Assembly (NCBI GenBank): GCA_047495785.1
Contig: JBLDXI010000012.1
Span: forward strand, 372,001-436,000
Origin: Lepidodermella squamata
Taxonomy: Eukaryota > Animalia > Gastrotricha
Reading direction: 5' to 3'
DNA length: 64,000 nucleotides
Positions within the stretch are counted from its first letter, which is position 1; each line of letters starts with the position of its first letter. The notes beneath the pieces were generated by a model that worked only from the letters and a program-made list of their open reading frames with translations, did no database searches and was not told the origin of the DNA. Made by a program: the position numbers and the translations under genes. This document shows, piece after piece, positions 4,701 through 47,707 of this stretch.

Positions 4701-5085
4701 ATATAGTCCATCCAATGCGTTGTTTCGCTCACCTGATGATAAGCTCCTGATTGATATTGAAATTCAGATCTCATATTCGTAGCTCTCTATTAACCTTTAT
4801 AACATTCGTTATCGTAGTACGAATCGGGATAGACAGCTCCTGTATGAAGGGCGTCGGTGTGGCGGTTAGCCATCGCTCGAATGTCGATCCCTCGATAGGT
4901 TACGTTCAAATTTTCCAGTGCTCGAAAAGCTGTCGGTTAAAAAATTTGGCAAAAATTATTCATCCATCGGATTTGTTGTAAAACCTACCGATTTCCATGT
5001 GGGTCATCATCCCGCAGCCAGAGATTGGCCCCACATGGTTCGCGAAACAAACGAGCCCTAATATTAGGCCCAACGAAAATTGCAT
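1727..5085 (-). CDS. GPLD1: GPI-specific phospholipase D, paralog 2 (multi-exon, complete)
   Basis: ATG at 5085 (MQFSLGLILGLVCF...CGMMTHMEI). Catalytic His motifs THW, AHDVADIPWH and AHSVAD are followed by FG-GAP/integrin-alpha repeats (DVNLDKYDDLIVG, DFNADGQPDLVVS, DVNGDGLKDLVIG, DVNGDAYDDLLVG). The last exon QTIISAPRSDDYGK...DSC ends at TGA 1727-1729. Confidence 0.9.
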
Positions 5086-5305
5086 ATTTTGTGCCACCCA
5101 GAAATATTATAAATAAAGCAGCGGACCCACCGGAAAATCCTGCTCAGTGTTATCTTATCCATTTTATTTCCAGGATCCATATCTCGCGAGAATTAAACCG
5201 ATATACGAACCGTTGTGTTTATTTAAACGATATCAAAAGAGCAACTGCAACAGTAAAGCGGATGGCCAAAAAGATGGCCTGAAAAATGGAGATCAGAATT
5301 TTGAG

Positions 5306-8300
5306 TCAATTGTCAACAGATGAAACCATCAATGAAAAAGGCGGGGAATATTCGAAAATAGAAACGAGTCCAGCTTGCCGACCGAACCGATCAGCACGCT
5401 CAGCAGAAACAACGATTAAGGCGTAATTTTCAAATGTCAAACAAGCAACGTTTGAGCCGAATTGGGCTTTGTTCAATCCGATTGAAAACACGGAATCAGC
5501 TTGGTCTTCTGGGCATGGTTCAACTGAACCATAGCAGCGTTTCCGAAGTGATGATTTAGGGAAATCTTGTCTGCTACTGCCGTAGAATAGAAATAGCTCG
5601 CCAACTGCTTGAGCGTCATCATTCGGGTAAGTCAAATCCGGCTGACGTACAGGTGCGCCAACAAATAGATCATCGAATCCATCTTGATTCAAATCAGTAA
5701 ACTGAAAATCGATAAGATAAATCGGGGAAAATTAGTTAAAATAATGTCAACCTTAACAAATCGACCAAATGCACTAAAATGGCGATCGCCGGCGAAGTTT
5801 CCAACAAGAACTCCGTTTGATTCGAACACATAAACAGATCCGGATTGCTTCAAGTTCAACGGAATCGTTCGAAAATGAGTTCCGTTGTTACCTTTCGGGA
5901 TGAATCTTTAAAATCTTTACATTTCATTTCAATCTCATACTTTCGTCAGGTGCCGAAATAGCGATTAGAGGTGCTGAATTTCGGCCGTTTGGGAACCCGA
6001 AACTTAGAGATTCGCCGAAATTACCAAACTCTTGAGATCCATTTGCAAATATTTTCAACGAGAGATTTTTTAATTTGAAACAATAAACAGCGCCAGCCAT
6101 TTGCAGCTTAATATTGCTGTATAAAATTTCAAAATTGATTCTATCATTTTTTCGATTTTTGCTCACTTCGCAACAATATTTTGAGCTGGAGCGCCAATTA
6201 ATAAGTTGCACTCGAGGGTTGAAATAGCCGAGTATCCAAACCATGAATAAGGCTGTAGAATAATAAACCAAATTAATGCAAAATGCATGGTTATCCGCTA
6301 ACTTTTGGCCCCCATACAACAATATCCGGCCGTTTACTGCGTTCCGGCCCGCTGAAGAACACATGAACCAGGCCGTTTTGGCGTTTCGCGTCATCGTCAA
6401 ACGACTGCGTGGCATACGGAGAGCCGACAATTAGATCTGCGAGGCCGTCGCCATTAACATCGCCAGTCGATAGCGAAGAGCCATAATTGCAGTAGCGCTG
6501 ATGTATTCGAGAAACAACAACGCAGGATTAGCATACAATTATCGCGCGAAGCGACAACCCGCATTACAAATTGTATTACAAATATAGTAACGAACCAATT
6601 TGCAATCGATCGCCAAGTCTGGCTGGTCGGCGAAACGATGAGCGCCGTAATAAACAAATACTTTGCCGGAATAAATCGCATTTGTCGCATCTTCAGTGTA
6701 AAGTGGAGCCGATATTGCGAAATCCAGTAGCGTGTCGTTGTTCAAATCCAAAATAGCGACTGATTCGCCGAAGCGTGACGACATGAAAGTGCCGCGGGGC
6801 GGCTCGAAGGTTATATTCGCGATTTTCGTCAAATCTTGATCGCCTCGAGGCAGGCCGCTTTTCGAGCCGAAAACCACAAAAACACGACCCTCTTGAAATC
6901 GATTATCCAGGCTGAAACCTGGCGAGCCGATAATTAGATCAGGGAAACCATCGTGATTCACATCGGCTTCAATTAAAACGTGGCCAGTCATTGAATAAGG
7001 CCTTGGTACAGCATAATTTCCCCAAGTTTCATTCACAATATTTCTTCTGAGATCATCAACGCTTAAATCACGAAATGAAGTCTTGTTAGCGGAAAATCGA
7101 TTGGAGAATTTCAATTTTAGCTTCCGAAATTCCGTGAGGGTCATTGGTGAATATTTAGGTGGTGTTATTGGCGGCTCGTTACCACATATCCAGTAAATAG
7201 GGTTTATTCCGCTTTTTTCGGTATTAGTGCAATTAGTTTCACCCGCGAGGTACTTGAAAGCTGTAGTCCAGCGGCGCATGGTCCATGCGGACATTTCATT
7301 AACACCGCCGAGAAAGTAATCTGAGAAAAATTGACAGAGTAGAGAATAACAAGTTTTTCATAATTATTTTCTACCGGTGAAACGCGGCGAGCTGAGGAAA
7401 ACACTGCGAGCCGCAAACACGGGGTACAAACTCTGGAAAATTTCCAGTTCACCAGCCGACTCAAGCTGCATCAAGTCGACGGCGCATGTTTGAATTACAG
7501 TTTCGCTCAAATTAATGCCCATTTTTCGATAAATTGCTAAGAGACTGTCAACAGGAACAAACCACTTCTGAGGCATTTCATCGCTATACAGACCATTTTC
7601 GAGCTCATACAAGCTAACTGAATCGCCTCCTTACGAAATAAATACGCGAAAATAAATAAGGCGGACGTTGAATAGGAGAAAATACCTGGGTCCGCGACGG
7701 AATGGGCCACTTGATAATTTCCGTGAAAATTCATGTTAGCCATAGTGTCAATAAAGCCTTGATCGATATCAAGACTGTGCCAAAGAACGTCAGCGACATC
7801 GTGGGATATAATGCCAAGAGTAAAGACCAACAATTTCCGCCCAGCCTGAATTGTTCTTATAACTTTCTGCGCATTTGGCCTCAACTTCATCAAACCTCAT
7901 CAATAGCTTCTGCGGCGTATTTTTCTTTGATGAAATCTAGCGCGGCCAATATGAAATTCATCCAATGAGTGGTTTCTGAGTTATCGTGATATTTTCCTGA
8001 AATTTCAACTTAGTATAAAAAATAGTGTTTGAAATTTTTTCGAAACCGAAATAGCATTCATCGCTGTAAAAGGAGTCTGGAAACACAGAGCCTGCCCTCA
8101 GGGCCTCCGGGTATTGCCGGATAGCCTGTCGCACATCGACGCCCTTGTACGTCACGTTGAAATACTCAGCAGCCCGATATGCTGAGTTGATATCATGGGA
8201 TGCGAATGAATTTAGCTAATTAGCATACAAAAATACCAATCTCATTATGCGTCAAAGAGCCGCAATTCCAGCTGTTTTTCGTGAAAATTATCAGCGTGAC

Positions 8301-22265: not shown

Positions 22266-23008
22266 ATGTTATCCTTTGTTGCTATCGCAATTTTTGGCGT
22301 ACTTGGGGCGTCGGCTCATGGAGGCAAAGGCGGATTCGGCGGTGGTAGCTGGTCATCAGAGGAGAGCGGTTACTACAGCGTTCTAACCAGCACGGTGCAA
22401 ACGTGCCTCGCCACCAAGGTGCAAACCCAGTCGATCGACATTATCATCGACCTGCCTGCCACCAGCCCGTACGGTAAACACGTTGGCCAGTTCATCGAAG
22501 CCGTTAGCACGTCGTTGCCTGCCAACAACGTTTACGTCATTTTCACGAATGGCAATTACCAGACACAGTCACCAGTCCCTGTGTCGAGCTTGTCGACATA
22601 TGCTCCGATGATTACCTCATACTCGAAGCGCCGAACCGTGACGTATAAGCCGACTACGACCGGCACTATGGTTCAAGCCATTCTTAACAACCGCCCGGCT
22701 CGTGAGTTTCAGTTTTGGAATCGAGTGATAAATATTATATCTTCCTGATTTCAGAGCTTCCAACGGCCAAGCCAGCTGGATCAGCAGCCACCCTCTTCAC
22801 AATCATCCTGACCGATTACTCGCAAATGACTCCGATTACTGCCTACCCGACGGGTGATAATGTTGTCATCTACGACCTGAGTGGCAACTTGGCTAATGCT
22901 GCTAAGGGCTACCGCACCCGAAACCTGATCATCCCACAGTCTCTGTACGGTATCGCTCTTACGACGCGTTACCAGATCTGCCAAGCCGCTGGCGGCATTA
23001 CAGCATAA
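22266..23008 (+). CDS. Secreted degenerate vWA-like protein, family member A
   Basis: Signal peptide; TCL...SIDIIIDL, VYVIFTNG, LPTAKP...FTIILTD, VVIYDLSG, TRYQICQAAGG; one intron. TATAAAA at about 22190. Confidence 0.75.
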
Positions 23009-23086
23009 AAATATCGATTCAATAATGTTTCACCAAATCTACTGCTGGCATTAGAATGACGATTCAAACTCTAATAATTATTTATT

Positions 23087-24096
23087 TTATCTCGGAAAAA
23101 TGCTTTGAAGAGTGCTCTTGTTGTAATTGAGAAGCCGGCTTCCTATTTCGTCTGTAACTTTGCCGCTTTCTTCCCGCTCGTCATCGGCATGGCAGCACAG
23201 CCATAAAGCGAATGATAGAGCACATGCCTGTATTGAGAAATAATTATTGAAATAATATAGACATTTTTCAAAAAAATCAAAAATTATTCTTTTACCCACC
23301 TGTGTGATCGAAATCATAATGAGAAGTGCAAGGGTTGTCGTTAGATGAGGTGACATATACTTGTTCCAAATTTCATCCAAGCACCCCTAATAAAATAAAA
23401 CCTGATTTTTTTCAGAAATCAGAAAATGTTATTCACCTTTGAGCAGCCTGTGGAACCCTCGTTGCATTTCTCGATCGGAGGGTACTGCCTGTCACATGCC
23501 GGCAAATCGTGGATGCCGCAGCAATCGAACTGAATACACCGGAATCAGTTGAATTTCGGCTTGAAAATTTACCGAAGTTTACCTGCTGATAGGCAAATAC
23601 CAAAACGCCTTGATATGTAACCGGCTGCTCCATTTCGGCTTCCATGTAATTTCTCAAAACCTCGATAATCTGTAAATATTGTTAACATAATAATGTAAAA
23701 GAAGCTCGAGTTTCGTGTACTTTGTATTGGCCGAATAAGCCGAAAGCAGTGACTGATGTCGAAACAGTGAAGACTATCAAAGTGAATATGAGAAAAATGG
23801 TCAGGCAGTAGAAACTGGAAAACGCAGCGCCGCAACATCCTATAACTATTGTTAAGCAAAATATTGAACCAAGTGCAATCGAGACAGTTCCGATTGCGTG
23901 GACGATTGTCGCAGCTTCCTTTAGGTAGGCTTGCTTGTTCGCCGACATCCATGAGCCGTAAATCACAAGTAACCCACTCAAAAGCTGCAAATTATAGAAA
24001 CTCTGAATTGATGTTTGAACCATGTTGAACACTCACGAAGCAAAAAATGTTGGTGAATAACATCACATTTCTGATGTGGCAATGGAATGACTTCAT
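23087..24096 (-). CDS. Tetraspanin (paralog 1)
   Basis: MKSFHCHIRNVMLFTNIFCF, four TM segments, IGCCGA after TM2, EC2 FDCCG with six Cys and GC before TM4. Confidence 0.85.
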
Positions 24097-24656
24097 CGGA
24101 ACTAGCCAGCTGGCATTATTTTAGGTGTGGAAAAATGGGGTAGGGAAATGGAAGATTTCGATTTTTTTTCATCTTAATTTATATGGAATTTATGCGAAAC
24201 CTAGGGCAATATCATGGGAATAATTTTGAGCAGATGTGGCACGTGTTCTGAGAATCAGCGCTGACCGCAATATTGCGCTCTTCACGATAATAAAAAAATC
24301 GAAGAAAATATAATTTCGACACAACCTTCAGACGGCGTCTATTTTATATATTTTTCCTATTATTTCACGTCATCACAATTAATTAAGGATGAAACCTATT
24401 GAAGAAATGCTCAATAATGATTGGGATCATTTTATTATGAAAAACTGAGCGAAAATAATGGCGACACGGCATCTTTCTCGAAAGTTTTCTGAAAACAATC
24501 AATGCCTTTGATTCTAACGACTAAAAAAGAGTCCTGCTGTAACTGCTTATTTTTTACCGCCAATATGCTGGCGGAAATGGTAAATGACGATAACATGAGC
24601 TTCGAATAAATGCGATATAAAAGAACAGATGATGTTGCGATTGTACGAGTTCTGCA

Positions 24657-25624
24657 TCATGCGCTCCTCTGGGCCACTATGCTGTAGCCTTCTTTACTGC
24701 CTCCTATTTCGCAGCATAGACAAAATGAAAAGCCGATAGCGCACATCTATAGGGGTGAGAAAACTGTTATAGGCATTGTTGTTTTTGGGACTAGAAAATC
24801 TTACGATGACAGCTGAAAGAACCATGAGTATTCCGATGGAACCGTGAATTGTCGGCGCAATGACCTTGTCCCACACCGGTTGGAAACAGCCTGTTAAACA
24901 CCTATTCGAGCCAGATTTGCATATATCGGCCGGTGGGTAATCTGTGTCGCAAGTGGCCATTGGTTCTATTCCACAGCAATTGAACTAAAATTTGGTAAAA
25001 AATTAAGAATTTTTGGGGTTGACGAGTTTCATTAGTTAATCACTCTATTATGAGCTGCTACCATCAGTCCGTCGTAGTCGACTGGCTTTTCGAGTTCTGT
25101 TCTCATGGTCAAGAGGAGAAGTTGTTTGAGCTGTAGGAAATAACAATATTAATCCAACTTTTTCGAAGTTCAGGATAAAAATAGTCTTACAAAGTCTTGC
25201 CAGATCGCTCCCAGCAGTCCAGCGAAGATCGCCGTACATAGCAAGATGACCATAATAAGCATGAACTAATTATCGTAAAAAATGTAATGTCCCATTAATT
25301 GATTGTTGGAAATGTTTTACCGCGAGCAATGCGCCTCGACTTTGGCGAAGCGCGCCGCAGCAGCCAAGGAAAGACGTGATTGAAGTCAGAATGCCGATGC
25401 AAATGAGTGAAGCTCCAACGCCGTGAACTATCATTTTCGCATCTTCCACGATGATATTTGGCTTGCTTATTATGATCCAGGATCCGAAACCAATCAGACC
25501 TATGCCTATCACCTGTTTTCATGCATTCGAATGAAAAAACGAACGAATTTCAATGGCAGTAGTTTACCACGAAGATGATATTAGCCACAATCATCGAGTA
25601 TCTGATGAAGCACTGAGTGAACAT
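24657..25624 (-). CDS. Tetraspanin (paralog 2) with C-terminal GYSIV (YxxPhi) motif
   Basis: MFTQCFIRYSMIVANIIFV, FLGCCGALRQS, EC2 FNCCG...TGC with six Cys, and tail ...KEGYSIVAQRSA*. Confidence 0.87.
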
Positions 25625-26086
25625 CTTCGAAAAATTCGGTTTATCAATAAAATAAACCTAGAGATAATTTCGGACTGTTATATCTCATGCCCAGCAATTT
25701 TTAAGGATTTTATTCGGAGCTTTTGGTGGGGTGATCGTGAAGTGAGCTGGTCGCTCAGCACTTTACTGCCATGTGTTTATTACCTCGGAACATTAATGCA
25801 GGTTGGGTAATTGATTGTGTTTCACACTCAAGATAAACGTCAACTGCATCGTATTATCCACCGACGCATATAGTCCTATATAGCAGATAACGTGAAAGAT
25901 AAAACCGTTCCCGCCACGGTCTACGGGCCCTGATTTTCGCGGCCAGATTTCTCAAAGATAAAACATTTCAGGAGCTAGCACTGAACCAAAATATTATTCA
26001 TTTACGGTCACAACATGTCTCGCTATTAATAACTTCAAGCGTTTTATGAAAAAACAATTTCAAAGCGATCCTAGTGTTACAATCAA

Positions 26087-27028
26087 TTAGTACAAAAGGT
26101 TTATGCCTCGAATACCGCCGACAGATTGGCACATCATATAGCGCACTATATTCACAAAGTAGTTGAGTTGCTGAGGCTCGTCGACGATTATAACGTTTTT
26201 TTGAATGTAGGACCGAGCCACGGATGACGCCGACCATCCACCGCCGATGTCTAGAATTAGGGCAGAGTTCGGGGATGGGAACAGTTCAGGTCTAGTTGCC
26301 TGAGTACCATCTGTTAAAACGACGGTAAATGCCGTCACGAGTTCCGCCGGTTTCGAAGTTGGCAAGCGAATAGGAATGCCGGCAGCTCGGGCCTTCAAAG
26401 TTCGCGATGTAATCTTAGGCAGCTGAGAACCTCGAGGGTCAAAATCTTCAGCCTCCATTCCAGAAACTGCCGAGCCTGATGAAGTGTGGAAAAAGCTCTG
26501 AATCGAAGCTCCTATCCCTTGGAAAAAACTGACAAATGCATTCGGCTGTTGCGTCGTAGTAATCGGCTGAGTTTCATCGTATGTCACAGTACTTTCGTTC
26601 AGGTAAAATTTTGTCTTGCCATCCAGAATTACCGAGTATAACTAGCGTAAAATAAAAATTATTCAGTCTTTTCGGTTATCAGATTTTCAAACCTTGAGGG
26701 CGTCCATATCCATTTGAACTTCCCTAATGAAGTCTCGAAGATAGTCGATAAAAATCGGGCCGAACCAACGGCCGAAAAATCTGCCGATAGCCGTAGTATG
26801 TTGAGTATTTTGAACATGCTCGTTTTCTTGAGGATTCGGCGCAATGTCGATTAAAATGTCGAAGCTAGTTGTTTGATTTGCTCCGAGAATGCAACTACGA
26901 ACTAAATTGTTAATGGCCAAGTTTCCTGAGCCATCATTGGATAGAAACGCCCGTGTTGTTGTAGGCCCAGCTTCAATCAGACCAACAATAACGAGAAGCA
27001 CTGAAAACAAACATACAATATATTTCAT
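26087..27028 (-). CDS. Secreted degenerate vWA-like protein, family member B
   Basis: Signal peptide; SCI...SFDILIDI, LYSVILDG..FYLN, LPTSKP...FTVVLTDG, LILDIGGG, VRYMMCQSVGG; one intron. Confidence 0.8.
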
Positions 27029-27348
27029 CTCGAAGTCTTTCAGGGCGACTCATTGTTAAAAAAGCTTTTCGCTCGTTCAAGACAAAAGCTGGGTGACTCA
27101 CTGCTTTATCGTTTTCTATGGAATGTGTTTTTGTGTAACGTGGGGGCGAATTTCATTATAAAGTATTTCATATTATGGCAAACTGTGTAGTCAACTGCTT
27201 TGAAGTTTTTGAAAGTTACACTCAGTACTCATTATTTTCTGACCTTGAGTAAGTATAACTATATCAATTGCAAGGGGATTTATTGGAAATTTCGAAGGAC
27301 AATTGTTTCATTAGGGGAATCCAAGGATGTTACATTTGAATGAACCTA

Positions 27349-28361
27349 TTACAGATCTTGCTGTTTGGTTTGAAGTCCTTTCAATGCTTGGCACATCATA
27401 AATCGAGTGATCTGCAAAAACCGCGCCAGATCTTGAGGATATTCGACAATCAGTACATTGTGAGCCGTGTAGCCCGGATTCGCCATCGACCAGAACCCGC
27501 CCAGGTCAAGAATTACGCTAGAATTCGACTGCGGGTACCAACCTGGAGTCGTTCCTTGACTACCGTCGGTAATAACCACGGTAAAGTCCGACGTGACATC
27601 CTTGCTCGTTGGCAAATTGATCGGATAGCCTTGCAATCGGCCCTCTAACAACTTTCGAGTCAACTTGGCTAAACGTGTCGACGACTTCAAATCAGGCCAG
27701 GTGTCATCCTCGAGAGGTGAAGCAGACTGAACGGTGTTAGTAAGAGCGTCCGCGAACATTCCCGCAACTTCATTGCCAAAATTGAAGAAAGCATGCAACA
27801 GGCCAAGATGCAGCTGGGCTGGTCGAGTTGTTGTCGTCGTAGTTGTAGTCGTAGTCGTAGTTCGATCTAAAACAGCCTGAGATGAAGCATTTAGGTAATA
27901 GATTCGCTCATCGTCGAGGATCCCTATGAAAAGCTGTAAAATAAACAGAAAATTAGGTCTTAATTTTATTTTTATTCGATTATTTTTGCCTTCTCGGGGC
28001 TACTCAAGTGATTTTCGATTTCTGCGACAAACAGCGCGATGTATTCGTGGGTGAATAAAGGATCCGCGTTGAAGACTCGACCGGCCGGCGTCGCTGGGAA
28101 AGTAGGTCGAACGTATTGCCGGTTCGATCCAGGGTAGTAAGGGCTCTTCAGCGGATTCCTCGCCACGTCAATAAGGATGTCAAATGAAGTGCCGTTAGCA
28201 GCGGTGGACAAGCACGTCTTAATTACATCGCGAATCGAAGTCGCTGCCGGCTCGTTGTGGCCACCTTTGGCCGAGGCGGTATTGTTTTCACTGGCAGCAG
28301 TAACCGCTGTACCGGCTAATACGAACACTAAAATCGAGACCTGTAAAGCCGCCGATCGCAT
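27349..28361 (-). CDS. Secreted degenerate vWA-like protein, family member C (GC-AG intron)
   Basis: Signal peptide; TCL...SFDILIDV, YYLN, Thr run, FTVVITDG, VILDLGG, TRFMMCQ. Intron 27934-27989 begins with GC at the position of the GT introns in paralogs B and D. Confidence 0.78.
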
Positions 28362-28629
28362 ATTATTAGGAGGAGGAGGAAAATAATAACCCTGACAATA
28401 GGATGAACACCTGCTTCAGGCTTTATTAATAAGTAACATCAGCAAAGACAAAAAACCATAAGAACTCGGGTTGGAAAAAAGAATATATAGGTATAATCCA
28501 TTGTTGGTCTAGACTGCTGTGTTTGCGAGGCTGTCATTCAAGCGAAACCAGGGGCTGTAACGTTATACGTGGGCAAAAAGTAACCTGTCCAGCTATTTGA
28601 CATAAGCGGGAGATTTGAAAATAAAAAAC

Positions 28630-29572
28630 CTAGGCCGCATTGATGCCGCCTAGAGATTGGCACATCATGTAGTGAACTGTGCCGACGAAATCATCTAAAT
28701 CCTGCGGCTGATCTACGAGCAAGACGTTTCGATAAGTGTAGCTTTTAGCAGCTGCCGATCCCGACCAGCCGCCGCCGATGTCAAGGATAACTGAAGACTC
28801 CTTAGCAGGGTACAAACTAAGAGGAGAATTTTGAGTGCCATCGGTGATCACAACCGTGAAGGGGGTGACGAAATCTGCCGGTTTTTTGTTCGGCAGGAAT
28901 AGAGCTTTACTGGCAGCTCTAGCTTTCAGAGCTCTTGCGGTGATTTTAGGAAGATTCGCTCCCTTTGGATCGATCTCATCCGGATCTGGTCCAGCCAATT
29001 GTTGGCCGGATGGCTGACGGGGTATCAATCTACCGATCGCAGATCCGATACCGCTGAAGAAGCTTGAAATCTTGCTTGGCTTTTCAGTCGTTGTAGTCGA
29101 TGAGCCGTCGAGTGACTGGACAGAATCAAATGATGTCGTAGATTCATTCAAGTAGTAATATGAAGATCCGTCAAGAATAACAGAGTAGACCTAAACCAGA
29201 TAGTTCTGTGGAAGTTCTCGATAGAAATGATTGAAAATCTACCTTAACGAGTGAATCCTCGTTCTTTTGAACATTTGCAACAAATTTCTTGACGTAGTCG
29301 ATGAAAATCGGGCCGAAGTACTTGCCAAAAAAGCGGCCGATCGAAGTGGAATGCTGAACACTCTGAACTTGCTCGTTGGTTTGCGGGTTCTGAGCTATGT
29401 CTATCAAAATGTCAAAGGAGACGGAACTGTTAGCTGCCATTAGGCAGTCGTGAATTAAATCATCGGTCTGTGGGCTTGGCGTAGTCGTTGTAGTAGGGCT
29501 TTTTGTCGTCGCATCCCTTGCGCTAGCGGCAAAACCAGTGAAGCACAGCACTGCTAAACTTAATCGCAACAT
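28630..29572 (-). CDS. Secreted degenerate vWA-like protein, family member D (closest to B)
   Basis: MLRLSLAVLCFTGFAASA; DCL...SFDILIDI, IGRFFGKYFGPIFIDY, FTVVITDG, VILDIGGGW, VHYMMCQSLGG. Confidence 0.8.
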
Positions 29573-29966
29573 AACTTTTCTTGGAGGGAACCAGAATTTT
29601 CCGTGAGTTAAATGCTGAATGTTGTTGAAAAACACTACTAAAACTACTTCTTGGCTTTGAAACAAAAATGCAGTGACGCATTCACCCAGATTACAGCGAG
29701 CACGTTTTATTTGTCTGTACAAGATGAAAAACTAGTCAACACGACGAGGTTAACAATAGGACGAGGGTGTTTTCATATTTTGAACGACAGGTGACAGAGT
29801 TGTTGAAAAAATACAGTTTAAACATTCAACATTCAATCTGCGTGTTTAGTTCTTTTTCAAGAAACAATGCACATTCCGATATACCGGCACGTGAATTGAA
29901 GGAATTATGTTTGATTGAAGGAAAACGTCAGTTTCTCGAGGGCTTAGAGATCCTCCTGTAGGCACT

Positions 29967-30574
29967 TCAAAGGCGACCAGCAGCAAAGGCGGAGTCCATA
30001 TCGAAGGTCTGGCTTGGCTGCTGCTGAGGGCGAGGCCGCATGAGGTATTGTTGCTGGGCGCGGGCAGCCTGGCTGGCATCGGCAGATCCGGATTGCTGGC
30101 GCAGAGCTGCGGCTTGCTGCTGCTGATAATACTGAGCGTACTGCTGTTGCTGGGCACGAGACGGTGATGGCGCTTCGCCGGCCTGCTGCTGCTGCTGAAG
30201 TTGGCGGTAGGCGGCCGCGTACTGCGGTTGCTGCTGCTGACGAGCTGCTGAGCCGCTGGCCAAGTAGTACTGCTGGGCAGCCGCTTGGGCTGATTGACGT
30301 TGTGGTGCCTGTTGTTGCTGTTGTTGCTGCTGCTGCTGAGCGTGAACCCAAGCTGGTTGCGAGTTTAGGTTGAAGGTTGGCTGTTCAGAAGGTCTCGGGC
30401 GGCGCTGAGGTGGTTGCTGAGCGTTGATCGCGGCAGCGGCAACTTCATCGGCGTCCTGGCTGAAAGCTGATTAAAATTCAAAATGTTGGATATATTAATA
30501 TGAGTGAGAGGTCAAAATTGTGTCATACCTGGGGCAACCAACTGAATGGCGAAAATGACAACGGCGAATTTCAT
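29967..30574 (-). CDS. Secreted Gln/Ala/Tyr-rich low-complexity protein (2 exons)
   Basis: MKFAVVIFAIQLVAP|AFSQ signal peptide split by a phase-1 intron; poly-Q tracts with QYY/QYAQYY; ends TFDMDSAFAAGRL*. Confidence 0.78.
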
Positions 30575-31236
30575 GATGGCGAGGTCTCAGATGTTTCTTC
30601 CCTAATATTTTAAGAAGCTAAAGCAGTGTGCCGCACGGTGGCAATTGCCAGGGCTTAAATAGCCATGACCGGCCCGTATTATTAGACCCCCGGCTATCGC
30701 GCAGCATCTCTTCTCCACTTCAAGACAAACAAAATATTGACACAGGTCTACTTTCAAGCATCGTAATATCCGCCAACAAAAAACACACCGGATAAATATT
30801 TATCATACATCACCCGAGAAAAAAATGGCCTTGCCGTGTGTTAAGAGGTCACGCCGGTGCTTGGAAAAAACTAGTTTGGTCTGGAAAGAGATTAACCCAA
30901 CATGCATTAAATTGCCTTAATTAATTCAAAGCAGTTCGAAAATTGACATAAAAAATCTCGGCAAAAGGTTATTTGGCCAGAATTCCTCCTTTTACAATGA
31001 GATCTCCATAATAATTGATCACTTAAATTTGATTCAGCTTCATCTTTTCGCGATAGCTCATTACGAGACTTCATAGCCTATAACGCTTCATTGTTCCTCG
31101 AATCGTTTTATTAAATCAAAGACAAAAGAATTGCGAAAGAATGAAGATTTGTTTTGTGGGCAGGTAGAGGTACAAGAATTAGGAAAAATGACGAAAAATT
31201 GCTTGAGAACTTGGAAATAATTGAAACCATGCGATG

Positions 31237-31974
31237 TTAATTCGATTTCACGGCAGCAACTTTGGTATCAGCAGCAGCAGCCGAACGGGGCCTGTTGTAG
31301 TACGAGTTGTAGTAGCCGTTCGAGAAACTTCCTCCCGGGCCGAACAACTGCTGGTTGATGATGTTACGCCAGTAAGCCTGGTATGCCGGATCGTTGTAGT
31401 TGCTGTTAACCGGGTATTGGCCGCTTGAAGGATACGACCCTGATGTAGGGTACGTGTTAGGATATGTGTTCGGGTATGTGTTCGGGTACGTGTTCGGGTA
31501 ATTGTTCGGGTACGTGTTTGGGTAGTTATTCGGATAGGTATTCGGATAGGTGTTCGGATAGGTGTTCGCATTGGTGTTCGGGTAAGTGTTCGGATAGTTG
31601 TTCGGGTACGTGTTGGGATACGAGTTCGGATAACTGTTGGGGTAGTTATTGGTTGGGTAATTGTTGGGGTAGTATTGCTGCTGTCCCATGTTGTTCGGAT
31701 AAGTCTGAGCAGACGGATTGCCAGGTTGGACGCCTGGCGGAAATAGATTCGCCGGGATGTTACTGGGAGCAAAACCGCCTGGCCCGTTGAAAATCGTCGA
31801 TGGCTGCTGATTGTTGTTCGGGTATGTATTCGGTTGCCCGTTGTAAGTGTATTCTGTATTACGAATTAATTATGAACGAAATTAAAGTGATGATGGCCTT
31901 GATGATTACTCACGTCCGAGAGCTTGAGCTGTGAACACAGCCATGGTGAAGGCGCAAGTTGCAACGAGATGCAT
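31237..31974 (-). CDS. Secreted Tyr-Pro-Asn repeat protein (2 exons)
   Basis: MHLVATCAFTMAVFTAQALG signal peptide, intron, then QYTYNGQPNTYPNN..., tandem YPN[T/N/S] and a Tyr/Asn-rich tail. Confidence 0.82.
31453..31671 (-). repeat. Coding 12-bp tandem repeat (16 YPN[T/N/S] units with two variant units)
   Basis: Units such as TACCCGAACACG/TATCCGAACACC vary mainly at synonymous positions. Confidence 0.9.
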
Positions 31975-33011
31975 TTTCTCTCCGCAAGTCAGCAAGAATA
32001 CAAGACTTATTATTGTTATGCACCGACTGGTAAAAATGTCGCTATTTTTCAAGACAGATCTTTGTTTTTATACGGTGACACCACCTCCTCAATTTTAGCT
32101 TTTGTCAATAACGCTTTTGCCGAGCATTACCGTATATATAGGGCGCGTGTCTTGTACATGTTTTTAGGCATCGTGACTTGTGGATTCGGTCATCTTTGAC
32201 ATCGTACATCGCAGTTTTTGCTATACGAGTGCAGGCCTGTGAGAAACAGACTGAAGTAACGCTACTTCATTATTACCCTCCTTTATTCAAGAGTATAGTG
32301 TCTAGTATTTTATTTAAACACTAGCCACGGTTCTCGTGCTATCTCTTTTTACAGTCGAGAAAATCCTACATGAGCATGGCGTAATATTTGCTCAAGTACT
32401 TGTATTTTGTTATAGAAATCCTCTGCAGCGACAACCGGCGGCGTCATTGCCGCTATATTAAGACGTTAACGCGCAAAGAATCGCGCCATGATACACGGGC
32501 GCGCGGTGACTTTTTTCGTGGTTACATCTGCTCGTTAACTTGGTCGTGTCTATTTACGCTCGGAATCTATGACAAGAGCGGTGTAGGCGGAACAAGCGAT
32601 CAATGGAGCGTGACGAAGGCGGAAGGCGCAACTCATCATCGTAGGCGTCCGGCAAAAAACAGCCGTATACCATTTCACCGCCTCGCCGCTCTGCCGATGA
32701 AGAACAAAGCATTTGCACCTAATTTCAGCTTAACTATAACGCGCCAGTGCCCCCTTAATGCCCTGAACGAAAATCTAATTGCTCGGTGCGTTCGGTGCGG
32801 AGCTTGTCCCTCATATCGCTTAGGACAGCCCAAGACAGCCGTTATACATATAGGCATGTGTTATATGGAATTTATTCATATTTTCAGGCGGAAAAGGATA
32901 CACCGAGAGATGGATAGTTTTTATGGATTGTCAGATAATTCAAGGTTCAAGTTGGCGATCGGTAGCTACCTTGATCGAATTGAGAGGGATGTCCTGCGTT
33001 TTCACTACCGG

Positions 33012-35196
33012 CTACCAAAAGCCCCTGGAACCTTGCTGCTGCGGCGGCGGATTTGGATAGACCATATTGTCTTGCCCATTTGCCTTGATAATAGTAACAG
33101 TTATAATTATTATTGAATTTAAATTTGCAAAGCAATCGAAAAAGGTCATACAGTCAATTGAGGTTGTGGTCCTGTTATACATATTCAAATAATTAAAAAA
33201 AATGCGATGGTCGACTCGGTAAAACACAAACTCTGAGGGCGGCTGGTGCTGTTCGAGTTTCCATTCTTACCATTGCCTTTAAATCATTTGCAAGTCGTTG
33301 AGAAGTCAATAATAATGTCAATTTCTACGAACCTGGCGGACGTCCATTGAAATTGTCCATGCCACCGAAGGAATTGCCTGAAGAACCAGAGTTGCCTGAG
33401 AATTGCGGGGGTTGATCTTCTCAGCAACATTTCAAATGAAGTAAAATTCAATTTACGAAGGGACTCTTAGTTTACTTGGTCTGCCGGATTGAGATGAACT
33501 TGGTCCACCCATGCCCATACCGCCTAGGCGACTCGGAATGTATTTTGGCATAGAGATTCTTGCGCAATTTTAGTACCTGACATTGGTGGGCCGCCTGGAA
33601 AAGCATTGATGTTGAAAATTATATATATTAGTCTTAGTAATGGTAATTTTACCTTGCGGGCGTTGATCGTTGGTAATCCTGCCACTGCCTGTATATGAGA
33701 AATTCCTTTTCAGATTTAGAATTGTATCAGTTATTGCGTTTATAACCTTGTGGAGGATTTTGCTGATTATTTTGTGGAGGACCTGAGAATACAAAATAAA
33801 TAATAAATGCGTATGAGTACTTCTTTGATTGAGTCCTTACCAGGACGAGACTGCGGGGCGCTGCTGCCTTGCATATTCCCCCCAAACTGAGAAGGTCTGT
33901 CGCTATTGCCGTTAAAATTGCCGCCTTGTGGAAGACGTTGTTGTTGGCTGGCACCTTCAAAATAAAATTGGAGAAAAATTAGCACCTGAGGCGGGCTTGT
34001 GGAGATCAGCAAAAAACGACAGCCCATAAATCCCTCTTGAATGATCATCAAATTCATCAAATCGTCCAAGAAGATTTGTAAATTAGAAAAATAATGCCGG
34101 CTATAAGCTGCTCGAGACAATACCATTGCTGTTTATATGCATCAGATATACTAGATATCACGTCAGGGCCATAATTTTCTGCATATTCCGAATAATATTC
34201 ATGATATTATATTTGAAATTGATATCAAGCCTGGCGAATTAAACATCCAAAAAGTGAATGAAATGTACCTGGTGTGCGAAATTGCTGGTTGTTGCTAAAT
34301 CCGAAGCCCTGTGCACCACCGGGCTGCTTTTGGTTGAAACTCCACGGCTCTTCACCTAAAATACAAACATTAGTTGCCTTGAAAATGGCGAGAAATCATC
34401 ACAATCCAATACCCATTGGAGGAAAGCCACCGTCGCCTTCCATATCTTGTCGAAAAAGAGAGGATATAATATGTTGTCGCTGAAGCTTGAAATGTTTCAT
34501 ACCATTCATACCATTTGGCGGAGGGGGAGGATTGCCACCTTTGTTGAAGGCGAATAAATGAAATTAATAAACTTTAGCGAAGAACTTCATCACTGCATAC
34601 CACCGCTTCCCATGCCGCTTCCGGTTCCAACGCTTCCCCTGCTGGATTGGGGAGGGCCACCAGCACCCCCGGGGCCCCACTGCATCCCATTATTACCTAA
34701 ATTTCACGCATTAGCGGCCTAAAATATGGCGATGAAGAACCATTCAATACCACCCGTTGAAGAAAAGCTATCGCCACCGTTGTTAGGAACACGGCTAGCC
34801 GTTTGCGTCGGCCGACCCTGAGGTGGGCCACCAGACCCTGCCATGCCACTGCTGGATTGAGCACGACCTGGTCAGAATGAACAATTTTAGTTTTAGTTTC
34901 TTACTTTAATAAATCTGAATATTATATATGATGTATGAAGGATTATTCGGCTGAGTCCGATAACCTATATTTTCTAATGTTTTTCAAGTTGAAAAGTCAG
35001 AAATCCTCACCATTGCCGCCATTATTAGGCGGGGATTGTTGCGGAGGCTGGAACGACTGGTAGTTTGCCGGTGCTATAATATTAGTTGCGGTAACCGTAA
35101 GTTAAAATGAGTTAACTTGATGTCTTCAAACAACATACCTGCGCTGGCGGCCCATGCGCAGGCCCCTATCACCAAAATCAACTTCAACGAAATCAT
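33012..35196 (-). CDS. Secreted Gly/Pro/Asn/Gln/Ser-rich micro-exon protein (~16 exons)
   Basis: Exon 1 MISLKLILVIGACAWAASA. Exons 2-14 (18 to ~120 nt) are all phase 1-1 with GT-AG boundaries, e.g. GGPPMS, GPPQNNQQNPPQ, GGNPPPPPNGMN. The last exon is ANGQDNMVYPNPPPQQQGSRGFW*. Confidence 0.75.
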
Positions 35197-35760
35197 CAAT
35201 AATATAATCTATTAGTGAAAGGCAAAATTGTTCTAATACATCTTGGTCTTCAACGCACACGAGAATGAGCGAAATCGAAGACTGACTACCCTCCTCCCTG
35301 TTTTCAAACAAAGCCGTTCCGCATCATCAGTTACTTAATTACGGCACGAGGTGCGACTTCAAGATGATCACGCGTGACTGCCGTGGTCCAATCAAAGTGC
35401 GCAATTTTTTCTCTAAATAATGACTGAAGTGTTAAGGTGGAGATGTGACTTCGCCGACATTATTTACCCTGGCATTGAATCTGTATTCACTCTTAATTGA
35501 TCTCATTAGTCTAAGATATAGAGTTACGTGAGGTACATACACCTACGTGTATATAAAATAAACAGCACGACGTACTACTTCATCTCTGAATGGCCTTTAA
35601 CCTAAATGGCAGACGACAATGAAAATATTGATGACTCTTCTTCCAAGAAAAAGACGGGCATATATTTATTTACAAGACCGGGTAAATCAGTAGAAATTCT
35701 GAAACTCTCATGTCATAATATAGATTGTGAGAATTAATTAATGGTCGAATTTAGGTATTT

Positions 35761-36963
35761 CTAAATATGTTGCTGTCGATTGGTTGTTGGGTAGAAGGAC
35801 GAAGTAGCGTTTTTCGATGTTTGCCCGTCATCAGAAACACCACCCAAATGTTGGCAAACCATGTAGCGAGCTGTCGTCATTAGAGGGAACAGCATCTCAG
35901 GCGGGTGGGCGATGATCAGATTCGATTTCGTGTAGCCATTGGTCACATTAGCGTAGCCACCGCAAATATCGAAAATGACACTTGGTTCCGGTAGTTGGCT
36001 CGGAGTAGTCCGTTGGAACCCATCTGTTATCACTACTGTGAATAGAGTAGTCATCTTGTTTGGTCTCGTTGTCGGTAATTCTGCGAAAAAATCGAAGAAA
36101 ATTTAGATGAAAGGTTCAACCTAAGGTCTTACTAAGATCTCGACCGTTGAAAAAGTCAGCAGTAGCCAGCTTAACTTTTTGAGCCAACGCATTGATTTGG
36201 TATTGGCCATCCATGTGATGGAGCTTGTTCGCGGTTGCGTTGGCATGAACCTCCTGGGCTGCTTCATCAATTGCTATATAATGGCGATCAGTTCCGTTCC
36301 AAATGATCACTTGAACCCGCTGTAGGACAACATTCTCAGTTAAAACGTCAACGACTTCAGCCAGGTGCTTCGCAATAGTTATCGGAAGAAGTTCAGGCCG
36401 TTTCGGGTTACCTCCAAGCAGCTCAATCAACTCGCGTGATAAATTTTTCAGCTCATTAGGCGAAATATCTATCAGAACGTCAACTGTCTTGTCGGACGGT
36501 ATTTTCTCGAGGCATCTCGCTAGCTTGAGATCTACGTTGGAGGGTATGTCGTCTTCTTCCTCTTCAAGCTCATCCCAGTTGTTGCTAATCGCGTCAGTTT
36601 CGTTGTGAAGTATTTTTTCATCGGCTGCTGATCGTTTTCTTCTCGTCTGCTCGTCATCATCGTCATCCTCATCGGAGCTATCGTCATCATCATCATCGTC
36701 ATCATCTGTTACAAAGAAATGCAATATCAATGATCGATGGATTTAGTAATCTTACCATAATCCTCATCATCATCGTCATCTTCTTCGTAATCATTGGCGG
36801 ATCGGCGTTTCCTGTCTGACAGGCAGTCGGGTCCTACGTCGACATCTAGAGGCGAGAAATCGAGCGGAAATGCGCCCGGCTCCTCGATCGGGAAATCTTG
36901 CGCCCCAACTTTGTAGCCACTAAGGGCTAAGACCACCAGGCTGGCTAGTAGATACGAACGCAT
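35761..36963 (-). CDS. Secreted degenerate vWA-like protein, member E, with poly-Asp pro-region and two furin-type sites
   Basis: MRSYLLASLVVLALSG; RKRR|SA, poly-D, RRKR|SA; RCL...TVDVLIDISP, VQVIIWNG, LPTTRP...FTVVITDG, VIFDICGG, ARYMVCQHLGG. Confidence 0.8.
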
Positions 36964-39969: not shown

Positions 39970-42623
39970 ATGGAAGCTTTCGAACAAATCCGAGAGCTTG
40001 GAGCCGGCAGTTATGGCCGCGCGATATTGGTTCGACGGCGTGGTACAGATCAGCCTTTTCTGGTAATAAAACAGATGCGCCTTCCCTACCTCATGTCGGC
40101 AGCTCAGCCGGAGGGTGCCGCTTGGAGTGACGCCAAAATTGTCGAACTTGCCTATCAAGAAGCAAAATTACTTACTACTCTGAGCCATCCTAATATTGTT
40201 AAAGCTCACGAAGCATTCGAAGGTTGGTATTATTTGCTTTTGGAAATAATTTTCCATGGATTTTTTCCCCTCAGATTCCGCAAATAATTTGAATTTGGTG
40301 ATGGAGTTTTGCGACGGAGGTGATTTGAACATGGCCATCACTCAACAGCAACAACTGGGCGGCGTTTTCTTCCCTGAATCGCAACTTCGTGCTTGGTTCT
40401 CGCAACTTGTCTTCGCAGTTAAATACCTCCACGACCGTCACATTTTGCACCGCGACATCAAGGCGGCGAATATTTTTCTCACCGTCGATCGCCGCGTTGT
40501 CAAACTGGGTGATTTCGGCATTGCGAAATGCCTCGATCGAACTGGTGGTCTGACGTTTACCCAAATTGGAACACCGACTAATATCGCCCCAGAGCTCTGC
40601 GATGGTCTGCCGTATGGTACAAAAGCCGAAGTTTGGTCGCTTGGAGTTGTTTTGTATCAAATGGCTACTCTAAATTATCCGGTAAAATTACTTGAAAATT
40701 CGGGAATAAATCTATTAAAATTTTGCAGTTTATGGAAAGTACTTTTCCAGCTTTGATGAATGCGATAAAAACAAAATCACCCGCGCCAATTTCGGAAAAT
40801 TTCTCCCCCGAACTGCGGCAGATCGTCGATCAAATGCTTGCAAAGAACGCAGATGACCGGCCGTCAGTTGACCAGTTGATTTCGTCCGATTTCATGTTAT
40901 CCGCTGTCGCCGAGTTGGTGACGAAGGGCGTTACTGTCGGCGCTGTTGCCGAGGTTCAGGCCACGATGGCAACAAGTAAATCTTCCTCGGAAAATTTGGC
41001 AGATTCAGCATTGACCAGCTGCTGTTCATCCTCGTCGGCGTACTCGAACGCATCCGCGCCTACTGCGACGGTGTCACTTCGTTCGACGGCCAGCGATGAG
41101 ATAAAAGCGGTAATTAGCGATGGCGATTTAGCTAGTCGCATCCGATCGACAGTCGAGCCGATTTTCCGCGAACCTCTGATTGCACTGCTCAACGAACAAA
41201 TGTTGACAGCTGAGACCCTGGTGACCTTGGACGATGGCGAGTTACGTGAGCTGTGTCCCAATAAGAAAGGTTCGTGTTAACCATTTTAGTGTTATCAATC
41301 CTAATTAATCCTCTTTTTAGGTCTACAATTGGCTCTAATAAAATTCGTCCAGCAATTACGCGAGGAATCGGGTGAAAATGTTGCAAAATCATTGCGTGAA
41401 TCGCTGGACAAAAGCGATATCGATTCTTTGAAGCGTTTATCTAAAAATAATAGCGAAATCGGTGATATAGTTGTCGACCCTGAAACTCGTAATACTTCCC
41501 TTCACTACGCGTGTAAGCTCGGCAATAGCGAGGCTATCAAGTTGTTGCTATCTCTCGGCGCCGATGTTTTGGCCCGAAATCGTTACGACGATCAACCGCT
41601 CCACGTTGCGGCATTCAATGGCCGGTTGCTGGCTGTCGATGTTCTTTTGCGAAGTGGCAAATGTGACGTCAATGCTGTGGGTCAATTGGGTCGAACTCCG
41701 TTGCACATGGCGGCGGCTTCTGGCTATCAAAACGTCGCGTCGATGTTAATTGAAAAAGGCGCGACGATTGACCCGATTTCTGGCCAGGAGGACCTGCAGC
41801 AAACACCACTTCTAGTTGCAACTTTTTACGGCCACGGTATAGTGTTTTTTAATTTCTATCTACCACAATGTCATCTTCGAACATCTTTCAGCTGGAATTG
41901 TTCGGTTGCTCTTGGAAAAAAACGCTAAGCTGACCTCGACGAACGCGCATGGCGACTCGGCGTTGCAAATCGCTACAGTTCAGAACAAGTTGGAAATCGT
42001 CAAAGCTTTGCTGGATAAAAACGGCCCTGGTATCGCCGAGTTGTTGGAACTGCGTGGCTTTCGAGGCCGAATGCCTCTTCATGCCGCCGCGGCTTGGGGC
42101 CGAGCTGATGTCGCGCGAATTCTGCTGTCGAAAGGTGCTAATCTGCGCGCGAAAAGTGGCCGCGATGAGTGCGGCGATTCTCCTCTCCACCTGGCTGCTT
42201 ACTACGGCCACACGGATGTAGCAAAGGTAAGCGGGACTCGATTTTTTTCGAAGTTTGTTCAAACTAGGCCGTTCATCTCAGGTCCTTGTCGACGCGGATC
42301 CAGCTGCAATGGAATTAAGTATGTTACTTATTTTATTTTATTTTTAATTTTATCTGTTCATTATTCCAGCCAACGATAACGGCGAGACACCTCTGAGTCG
42401 AGCTTGTTTTAATGGCCAGCTTGCCGTAGCGCGGCTGCTGCTTAACCGTGGAGCTTCGGTTACAGTTCGAGACAAAAGCAGTCACACGCCGTTGTATTAC
42501 GCCAAGCTGAAGTCACAGCAGATCGTTGAAGCATCGGGCGCCGGTTCGGGCAGTGCAATAGAAAATCCTGCCGCAGCTATTGTGCAGCTCCTGATGCAAA
42601 ATCGGCAAAATTTAGAAGACTAA
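39970..42623 (+). CDS. NIMA-related (NEK) kinase fused to a SAM-like domain and ankyrin repeats
   Basis: GAGSYG, VIK, HPNIV, HRDIKAANIFL, KLGDFG, IGTP..APE. SAM-like LNEQMLTAETLVTLDDGELREL.P..G...AL. Multiple ankyrin repeats (TSLHYAC, QPLHVAA, RTPLHMAA, QTPLLVA, DSALQIA, MPLHAAA, DSPLHLAA, ETPLSRA, HTPLYYA). Confidence 0.85.
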
Positions 42624-44371: not shown

Positions 44372-45439
44372 ATGTTCGTACTTGAGTTTTCGCTTTTGTT
44401 ATTCTCGTTCAATCTCCTCTCGGTGATTGCAGTCAACGACAATGGTCCTTCGCCTGTTGCCGGCAAATTGCTTCTGAAAGGTCCCAGCTTTGTTTGGGGA
44501 TACGGCGCCGATAACGGCCCAGCCGTCTGGCCTCAATACTACCCTGTAGCTCTAGGCAAGCGTCAATCCCCGATAAACATCGATTTCGACGGAGCCAAGT
44601 CAGACGAGAACCACTCACTACCCCCTATTAAAACTAAGTACAATACGAAAGGCACCGCCCAAACTCTATCAACATTCGGTTACACCTTCACGATTAAATT
44701 TGCTGCCAACAAATCAAACGGTAATTTTAAAATTGGAGCTATGATGCGTGGCTCTCTTTATAAACGGAATTATTATTAGAGCTATCGGGCGCGGCTTTGA
44801 AAGGTGTATATCAACTGGCCAATATCCACTTGCACTGGGGAGCAAACGGCCGTGTTGGCTCGGAGCACACGTTCAACGGGAAGCACTTTCCTGCCGAACT
44901 GCACATCGTTCACTTCAAAAAATCCTACGGCAATCTGACGACGGCTTTGAATTACGGTGACGGTCTTGCTGTTCTCGGAATATTTGTCAAGGTCTCAAAT
45001 GAATGAACTCTATCTTGGATTGCTTTCTATGCTTTATTCAGGTTGGTGAGAAAAATCGTGAAATTCAAAAGATTATCGACAAAATTGCCAATGCTGTGCC
45101 GCCGGCTAACAAAAATGGAAGTGATATCATCCAAAATCAGCGCCTGGACGTCTCGAAACTCCTGCCTGATGATACCGACTGCTTCTTCACCTACCTCGGT
45201 TTGGGCTTGATACATGATTCTCTCCCTTATATTTTACTTCATTTATTTAAGGATCTCTGACCGCTCCGCCACTCAAGGAAAGTGTAATTTGGACCGTGCT
45301 GCATGAACACATCGAAATGTCGGCCAAGCAGTTGCGCACTCTTCGCAAGTACTTTCCAACAAATTACCGCCCAGTTCAGCCTCTTAATGGCCGGGTCGTT
45401 CGCCGTTCGGGCACCTGCTTGGGTGACTTCTCCGACTAA
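44372..45439 (+). CDS. Secreted alpha-carbonic anhydrase, copy 1 (4 exons)
   Basis: Signal peptide; WGY, GP..W, RQSPINI, zinc ligands IHLHWG and ELHIVH, GSEH, GLAVLG, YLGSLTAPP..ESVIW, NYRPVQPLNGR. Confidence 0.93.
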
Positions 45440-46643: not shown

Positions 46644-47707
46644 ATGTTCGCGCTAAAGCTTTCGCTCTTGTTATTTTCCTTTGATCTCCTCTCCGTTGTA
46701 GCAGTCAACGACAACGATGAGCTGTCACCTATACGTAAGCCTTTATTATTGCAAAACACTGGATTTGTTTGGGGATACGGTGCCGATAACGGCCCAGCCG
46801 TCTGGCCTCAATACTACCCTGTTGCCCTTGGAAATCGCCAGTCTCCAATCAACATCGATTTCGACGCAACGAAGCCTGGCAAGAGACACCAGCTACGTCC
46901 AATCGAAACTAAGTACAGAACAAAAGGCACCGCTCAGACCTTATCAACGACTGGTTACACCTTTACAATCAGGTTTGCTGCCAACAAATCAAACGGTAAC
47001 TATAAAATTTGAAGCTCCCCTTGATCTTATTTACAAAAGAATTTTGCAGAGCTATCGGGCGCGGCTTTGAAAGGTGTATATCAATTGGCCAATATCCACT
47101 TGCACTGGGGAGCAAACGGCCGTGTTGGCTCGGAGCATACGTTCAACGGGAAGCACTTTCCTGCCGAACTGCACATCGTCCACTTCAAAAAATCCTACGG
47201 CAATCTGACGACGGCTTTGAATTACGGCGACGGTCTTGCTGTTCTTGGAATATTTGTCAAGGTCCGAAATCATTGATTGAACTTTTTCCTGGAAAAATTT
47301 ATTTGCCTTGTTCAGGTTGGTGAGAAAAATCGTGAAATTCAAAAGATTATCGACAACATTGCGAATGCTCTGCCGCCGGCTAACAAAAATGGAAGTGATA
47401 TCATCCAAAATCAGCGCCTGGACGTCTCGAAACTCCTGCCTGATGATACCGACTGCTTCTTCACCTACCTTGGTTTTAGTTTGATACCTAATTTATCTTT
47501 TCTTTAATTTCATTTATTTAAGGATCTCTGACCGCTCCGCCACTCAAGGAAAGTGTTATTTGGACCGTGCTGCATGAACACATCGAAATTTCGGCCAAGC
47601 AGTTGCGCACTCTTCGCAAGTACTTTCCAACAAATTACCGCCCAGTTCAGCCGCTAAATGGCAGGGTCGTTCGCCGTTCGGGCACCTGCTTGGGTGACTT
47701 CGACTAG
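46644..47707 (+). CDS. Secreted alpha-carbonic anhydrase, copy 2 (4 exons)
   Basis: Same motifs and intron positions as copy 1; exons 2-4 are nearly identical to copy 1. Confidence 0.93.

Follow-up and report, generated by a model that had tools for sequence, protein, structure and literature searches.

A tandem array of genes for secreted proteins with a predicted, highly divergent von Willebrand factor A fold in the gastrotrich Lepidodermella squamata

Gene content of the locus

We analysed a 64,000-nucleotide (nt) stretch of the genome of the gastrotrich Lepidodermella squamata (hereafter the window; contig C12, positions 372001–436000, in a 121.2-Mb assembly of 151 contigs) that contains a cluster of ten consecutive genes between window positions 22266 and 36963. 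An initial annotation had described these genes as encoding only secreted or surface proteins, five of which resemble the von Willebrand factor A (vWA) domain. We found all ten genes at the positions claimed, nine of them on the minus strand, with the outermost start codons (the ATG of gene A at 22266 and that of gene E, on the minus strand, at 36963) forming the ends of the locus. The cluster consists of five paralogues of one family (genes A–E), two tetraspanin genes and three single-copy genes for secreted low-complexity proteins, which are nested in the family array between genes D and E and share its orientation (Table 1). The intergenic gaps are short (~270–670 bp), the G+C content of the window is ~43% and its genes carry short GT..AG introns of 50–80 nt. 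Signal-like N termini and tetraspanin Pfam matches bore out the description of the products as secreted or surface proteins, and the vWA-like call for the paralogues was supported by profile matches, a profile–profile comparison and two structure predictions (see below).

Two further claims of the initial annotation held in part. The absence of housekeeping genes applies to the interval from 22.2 to 37.0 kb but not beyond it, where intracellular genes occur. Two carbonic anhydrase genes and two additional paralogues (genes F and G) are indeed present nearby, but intracellular genes encoding a NEK-like kinase with ankyrin repeats (40.2–42.4 kb) and an eIF4G-like protein (49–52.5 kb) lie between these genes and the cluster.

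Table 1. Positions of the genes and features discussed, numbered from the first letter of the window
Feature	Position	Strand	Structure and remarks
Gene A, predicted vWA-fold family	22266–23008	+	Exons 22266–22701 and 22755–23008; 53-nt GT..AG intron
Gene B, predicted vWA-fold family	26087–27028	−	Exons 27028–26693 and 26641–26087; 51-nt intron (26642–26692)
Gene C, predicted vWA-fold family	27349–28361	−	Run of 12 Thr in internal loop; likely intron 28003–27924
Gene D, predicted vWA-fold family	28630–29572	−	Exons 29572–29243 and 29190–28630; 52-nt intron
Gene E, predicted vWA-fold family	35761–36963	−	Three exons; poly-Asp/Glu tract precedes the domain
Part of gene E with the acidic tract	36116–36730	−	Includes a run of ~25 Asp/Glu
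Gene F, predicted vWA-fold family	55630–56406	−	Pro-rich loop after strand 1
Gene G, predicted vWA-fold family	56970–57974	−	Signal-peptide exon (ATG 57974) and three further coding exons
Tetraspanin 1	23087–24032 (bounds approximate)	−	Pfam-positive exon 23682–24032; PF00335, 41.9 bits (cut-off 32.1)
Tetraspanin 2	24694–25512 (bounds approximate)	−	Pfam-positive exon 25270–25512; PF00335, 34.3 bits (cut-off 32.1)
Secreted Q/A-rich gene	29967–30574	−	Signal-peptide exon, ATG 30574; main exon 30470–29970; single copy
Secreted YPN-repeat gene	31237–31974	−	Signal-peptide exon, ATG 31974; main exon 31869–31240; single copy
Secreted G/P/N/Q/S-rich gene	33015–35196 (3′ bound approximate)	−	About ten short exons; signal-peptide exon, ATG 35196
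Alpha-carbonic anhydrase 1, first exon	44372–44779	+	PF00194, 36.6 bits (cut-off 27); signal-like N terminus
Alpha-carbonic anhydrase 2, first exon	46644–47012	+	PF00194, 34.2 bits (cut-off 27); tandem copy
NEK-like kinase	40256–42379	+	NEK-type Ser/Thr kinase domain followed by ankyrin repeats
GPI-specific phospholipase D-like genes	400–7900	−	At least three in tandem, from translations of open reading frames only

Genes A–E have a common architecture, match one another with E values of 1e-10 to 1e-49 and each encode an N-terminal hydrophobic, signal-like segment. The C-terminal half of gene A could be aligned with the rest of the family (alignment A5). The model of gene C is less sure, its intron having a weak donor. 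In P0013, a database orthologue of gene E, an Asp/Tyr-rich tract likewise precedes the vWA-fold domain. We also observed a short poly-Asp insert after strand 1 in L001, an intronless paralogue elsewhere in the genome. The acidic tracts of gene E, P0013 and L001 could act as cation binders.

Fold prediction and departures from canonical vWA domains

The window genes were searched exon by exon, and the intronless paralogue (L001:1679–2584, on contig C7) and database orthologues served as full-length stand-ins. We used alignments A5, A7 and A8, which were checked by eye, and excluded the MAFFT alignments A1–A4, which misplaced exon fragments. In A2–A4, MAFFT had repeatedly aligned two similar segments with each other, S-V-I-x-D-x-G, K-Y-Y-I of the first hairpin and T-V-I-D-I-G, R-R-F of the later strand.

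A HMMER scan of 1.84 billion representatives with a 22-row profile of the C-terminal half of the family (A5) returned 28 matches. About 17 of these, including 14 of the 15 matches with E ≤ 1e-10, share the family architecture and appear to be members, and five are bona fide multi-VWA proteins (P0020, P0021, P0025, P0029 and P0030; E values of 3e-6 to 7e-4), in which the family profile aligned in register with the C-terminal half of the Pfam VWA domains. Comparison of the family (A7) with five vWA domains by hhalign gave probabilities of 92.5–92.8% over 167–174 columns, and helix 1 and the Thr helix, the T-D-G, I-D-I-G and last strands, and the C-terminal Cys were each paired with their vWA counterparts. 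Searching the PDB with the family profile found collagen VI weakly (E ~1), and a PDB sequence search with a single protein gave nothing meaningful. Matches to designer 'Pizza' propellers in the PDB profile search were rejected as artefactual summed hits.

We then considered predicted structures. AlphaFold models were obtained for the L001 paralogue (A7, 40 rows; mean predicted local distance difference test (pLDDT) score 80.8, predicted template modelling (pTM) score 0.77, core >90) and for P0016, an orthologue of gene C (A8, 44 rows; mean pLDDT 74.5, pTM 0.70). The Foldseek list consisted almost wholly of vWA-fold or I-domain proteins. With VIA-align, both models matched PTMP1 (proximal thread matrix protein 1 of the mussel byssus) at Z scores of 10.8–10.9 (10.4–10.9 when the scan described next is included), and the A1 and A3 domains of VWF, collagen VI and integrin I domains at Z scores of 9.1–10.6; VWF A2 also fell within the overall span of 9–11. 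The structural alignments of both models spanned 140–166 residues (150–166 for the VWF and collagen VI domains) at 3.2–4.4 Å and covered whole target domains. A Foldseek-independent scan of 48,161 PDB representatives placed vWA-fold proteins at every rank from 1 to 27; the first other fold appeared at rank 28, with a Z score of 8.0.

In the family proteins, a signal peptide and a Cys precede strand 1, at the end of which stands an invariant Asp (D-x-A-x-S/N-P); then follow, in order, a helix, beta hairpin, disordered Thr/Ser/Pro-rich loop, helix with a conserved Thr, V-I-T-D-G strand, I-D-I-G strand, last strand and C-terminal helix with a Cys. The disorder in the models falls after the first beta hairpin, where canonical domains carry helix 2, and coincides with the Thr/Ser/Pro-rich sequence; this Thr-rich loop is probably mucin-like and O-glycosylated.

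Conservation was uneven across the positions of the metal-ion-dependent adhesion site (MIDAS), which we assigned by motif order and hhalign rather than by side-chain superposition. The Asp that ends strand 1 was present in all 26 sequences compared. The first MIDAS Ser position was occupied by Ala in 20 of 26, and the second by Ser in 16 of 26 and by Asn in 5 of 26 (Asn in genes B, C and D), with a Pro following it in 25 of 26. The helix Thr was found in 20 of 27 sequences and the Asp of T-D-G in 31 of 32, and an additional Asp in the I-D-I-G strand was invariant (32/32). These patterns point to a metal site that is weakened or altered in the family. Two Cys residues were also conserved, one preceding strand 1 (24/26) and the other within the last helix (28/32), and hhalign aligned the C-terminal one with a Cys of the VWA templates. 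This Cys pair suggests an end-to-end disulfide that would hold the two termini together, like that of VWF A1 and A3.

Several observations weigh against a vWA assignment. None of the Pfam VWA models (PF00092, PF13519 and PF13768) matched the window exons, the full-length paralogue or ten full-length relatives, even at E ≤ 10, and Pfam offered no alternative family for the paralogues either. Foldseek scores were weak (best E 8.5e-4, TM-scores 0.25–0.45), and unrelated alpha/beta folds reached a Z score of ~8, near the ~10 of the family. The proteins modelled were the intronless paralogue and the gene C orthologue, not the spliced window proteins; and the hhalign comparison was partly circular, its vWA templates having been chosen by the family's own profile. 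Finally, the canonical MIDAS (D-x-S-x-S ... T ... D) is not intact and reads D-x-A-x-S/N ... T ... D. Many true vWA domains, VWF A1 and A3 among them, also lack a working MIDAS, so that a degenerate site does not exclude membership of the fold.

The missing Pfam match, the weak Foldseek E values and the Z scores of 7–8 reached by non-vWA alpha/beta folds would also fit a generic Rossmann-like alpha/beta fold, in which case the family would be an unrelated new fold family or an enzyme. We regard this explanation as very improbable, given that the sequence-level matches to true VWA proteins are in register, that the T-D-G strand, the Thr helix and the strand-1 Asp lie at MIDAS-equivalent places, that the C-terminal Cys aligns with that of the VWA templates and that the leading 27 structural matches are vWA without exception. 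Together, the profile comparisons and predicted structures establish a vWA fold and remote vWA homology for the family at the level of models. The predicted fold extends to genes A–G by alignment, as their products share 25–64% identity with modelled or orthologous proteins in the exons aligned.

The family resembles the vWA domains of VWF A1/A3 and collagen VI in fold, in the order of strands and helices, in secretion and in the T-D-G strand, and it shares with VWF A1/A3 a Cys near each domain end. It differs from the VWF and collagen VI domains in being invisible to Pfam, in having Ala at the first MIDAS Ser position in most sequences, in the disordered loop that replaces helix 2 and in the extra invariant Asp of the I-D-I-G strand. 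Its members are also single-domain proteins of ~300 residues, whereas VWF and collagen VI are large multidomain proteins. The best structural match, PTMP1 (PDB 4cn8, 4cn9 and 4cnb), is likewise a secreted vWA protein of an extracellular material. However, PTMP1 comprises two vWA domains, its MIDAS is occupied by metal (by the title of 4cn9), and its identity to the family is only 11–13%. Its lead over VWF A1 is less than one Z unit and amounts to a tie, so neither a particular kinship with PTMP1 nor a common function can be deduced. The family would represent an unannotated and very divergent branch of vWA proteins, undetected by Pfam, whose domain is interrupted by a disordered Thr-rich loop and has a modified metal site, and an example of how far a vWA domain can drift while its fold is retained.

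Distribution and age of the family

Across the genome, we found 22 family loci on seven contigs, and the seven loci in the window constitute the largest array. Paralogues are 20–58% identical. A second array, on contig C20 (L002, C20:1200500–1210499; ~2940–7512 of that locus, minus strand), contains three members of the window subtype and is flanked by a CUB-like open reading frame (ORF) and a formin-like gene. At a family locus on contig C33, the neighbour is a large gene that is apparently intracellular as judged from its ORF only.

Outside this genome, relatives were few. A word-index search with the full-length paralogue found one protein, 59% identical, and word-index protein searches with the gene D exon and with a tetraspanin exon found no match. 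A metagenome locus scan with exon 2 of gene B returned nothing, and a search of the ESM Atlas gave no usable match. The relatives in the databases are mostly 267–378 residues long, and none is annotated as anything other than a 'hypothetical protein'. To judge from the databases, the predicted family is confined to this lineage. Several of the relatives come from ~1-kb contigs (Logan or JGI) that look like transcripts.

BLASTP assigned gene B (64%, exon 2) and gene D (51%) to P0008, gene C (38%) to P0016 and gene E (57%, last exon) to P0013; the nearest relative of genes A, F and G was P0014, with weaker matches. A FastTree phylogeny of the C-terminal half, whose support values were not inspected, paired B with P0008 (D branching outside), C with P0016, and E with P0013. 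A separate orthologue in a relative thus exists for each of genes B, C and E, which indicates that the duplications predate the split from that relative, that distinct paralogues were kept and that the array is old.

The orthologues also bear on synteny in relatives, which the initial annotation had put forward as a check. The longest contigs of P0008 (46,864 and 30,241 nt) are also those of P0016, from which we infer that the adjacency of B and C is conserved in the relative. By contrast, the orthologue of gene E, P0013, lies on another contig (34,963 nt), so that the synteny seen is limited to the B and C pair. At residues ~132–152, P0008 has an in-frame insertion of 21 residues that coincides exactly with the site of the gene B intron. 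The insertion most likely stems from a gene call based on ORFs that left an intron unspliced, and the intron position would then be conserved between the two species.

A multi-copy family of this kind might be a fast-evolving secreted repertoire for the recognition of microbes, food or environmental ligands, or for defence, with the low-complexity and tetraspanin genes as unrelated passengers. The restriction to one lineage (~15 relatives among the 1.84 billion representatives), the tandem arrays on at least seven contigs, the low identity among paralogues and the variable, mucin-like loops are all consistent with this idea. However, the orthologues are 1:1 and old, whereas immune repertoires typically turn over rapidly by birth and death; conservation of the core motifs is strong; and we found no lectin, TIR, death or other immune-type domains. 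We therefore consider a recognition or defence repertoire distinctly unlikely.

Possible function and neighbouring genes

The explanation that we favour, and think probable though by no means certain, is that the locus is an old tandem array of lineage-restricted secreted proteins, each consisting of one very divergent vWA domain, that bind or bridge extracellular partners. The mature family members would be secreted proteins of ~270–340 residues with a single vWA domain. By analogy with the vWA domains of collagen VI, matrilins and PTMP1, their most likely role would be to bind other extracellular proteins and bridge them, and different paralogues may have been kept for different partners. 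The products of the low-complexity and tetraspanin genes may share a secretory product with the family. We found no paper on gastrotrich glue, cuticle or egg-shell proteins that mentions vWA, and no proteome of these materials. The genes described here are concrete candidates for work on the extracellular matrix of gastrotrichs, a barely studied phylum; at present they stand as a solid gene-family annotation accompanied by a hypothesis.

The tetraspanin assignments in the cluster rest on one Pfam-tested exon per gene. Among the low-complexity genes, the main exon of the Q/A-rich gene encodes 31% Q, 21% A and 5% Y, and the gene has no Pfam match. The main exon of the YPN gene encodes 21% N, 16% P and 15% Y and contains ~15 copies of a 12-nt unit that specifies Y-P-N-T/N/S. 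These units vary mainly at third codon positions and keep Y-P-N-(T/N/S), which indicates that the frame is coding and under constraint at the protein level. Genome searches with the Q/A and YPN genes found no relatives elsewhere in the genome, making both single-copy orphans.

The presence of these genes within the array raises the possibility, which we hold to be doubtful, that all ten genes form one co-regulated secretory module of a single gland or cell type and make one extracellular material, such as glue, cuticle or scales, or egg shell, in which the vWA-fold proteins would cross-link the Tyr/Gln/Gly-rich disordered proteins. Such a module would fit the uninterrupted run of ten secreted or membrane genes, nine of them co-oriented and closely spaced, and the position of the low-complexity genes inside the array. 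The Tyr content of the YPN protein is also in line with it, as high Tyr content suits oxidative cross-linking. Additionally, the structure closest to the models belongs to a matrix protein of the mussel byssus, albeit one tied within 1 Z unit with VWF A1, and the orthologues of B and C remain adjacent in the relative.

Several findings argue against a single material system. The neighbours of the family differ on C20 and C33, where they are CUB-like, formin-like and other, apparently intracellular, genes. The low-complexity genes lack detectable relatives in the genome, and the orthologue of gene E is absent from the 46.9-kb contig that carries those of B and C. Furthermore, seven of the ten genes derive from two tandem duplications, which leaves only ~5–7 independent secreted units; on our estimate, which is not a computed test, chance could without great improbability place ~5–7 independent genes for secreted or membrane proteins in a row somewhere in the genome. 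The association of the family with low-complexity genes did not recur at C20 or C33, and in the relative only the B–C adjacency was inferred.

A more specific version of a single-material system would be a set of co-expressed genes dedicated to a material found only in gastrotrichs, be it cuticular scales, the shell of resting eggs or the glue of adhesive tubes, with the vWA family and its modified metal site bridging Tyr/Gln/Gly-rich disordered proteins from the same cells and the tetraspanins organising the secretory membrane. We likewise regard this as unlikely, if worth keeping in view: were it true, these genes would offer one of the earliest molecular entry points to structural secretions in gastrotrichs. 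Should the low-complexity neighbours prove to be co-expressed, the locus could serve as a small-scale model for the assembly of a lineage-specific material toolkit.

The two genes for secreted alpha-carbonic anhydrases lie 7–10 kb from the cluster, beyond intracellular genes, and are closely similar and in tandem, as judged from their first exons. In biomineral and adhesive matrices of invertebrates, secreted vWA modules (for example in Pif and BMSP of mollusc shells) occur alongside acidic or Tyr/Gly/Gln-rich disordered proteins and carbonic anhydrase. Proteins of the Pif/BMSP type are multidomain, with chitin-binding and other modules, and were found by proteomics of the material, whereas the present locus is known from genes alone; to our knowledge, gastrotrichs have no mineralised parts.

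We saw no consistent splice-acceptor or operon signature directly upstream of the start codons in the cluster. A plus-strand ORF between the YPN and G/P/N/Q/S-rich genes (32388–33116, 242 codons) was considered and set aside as probably not a gene: it has no ATG in the ORF list and no Pfam match, and is single copy. At the other end of the window, the tandem ORFs that resemble GPI-specific phospholipase D combine an N-terminal region of the zinc-dependent phospholipase type with FG-GAP-like repeats downstream of it.

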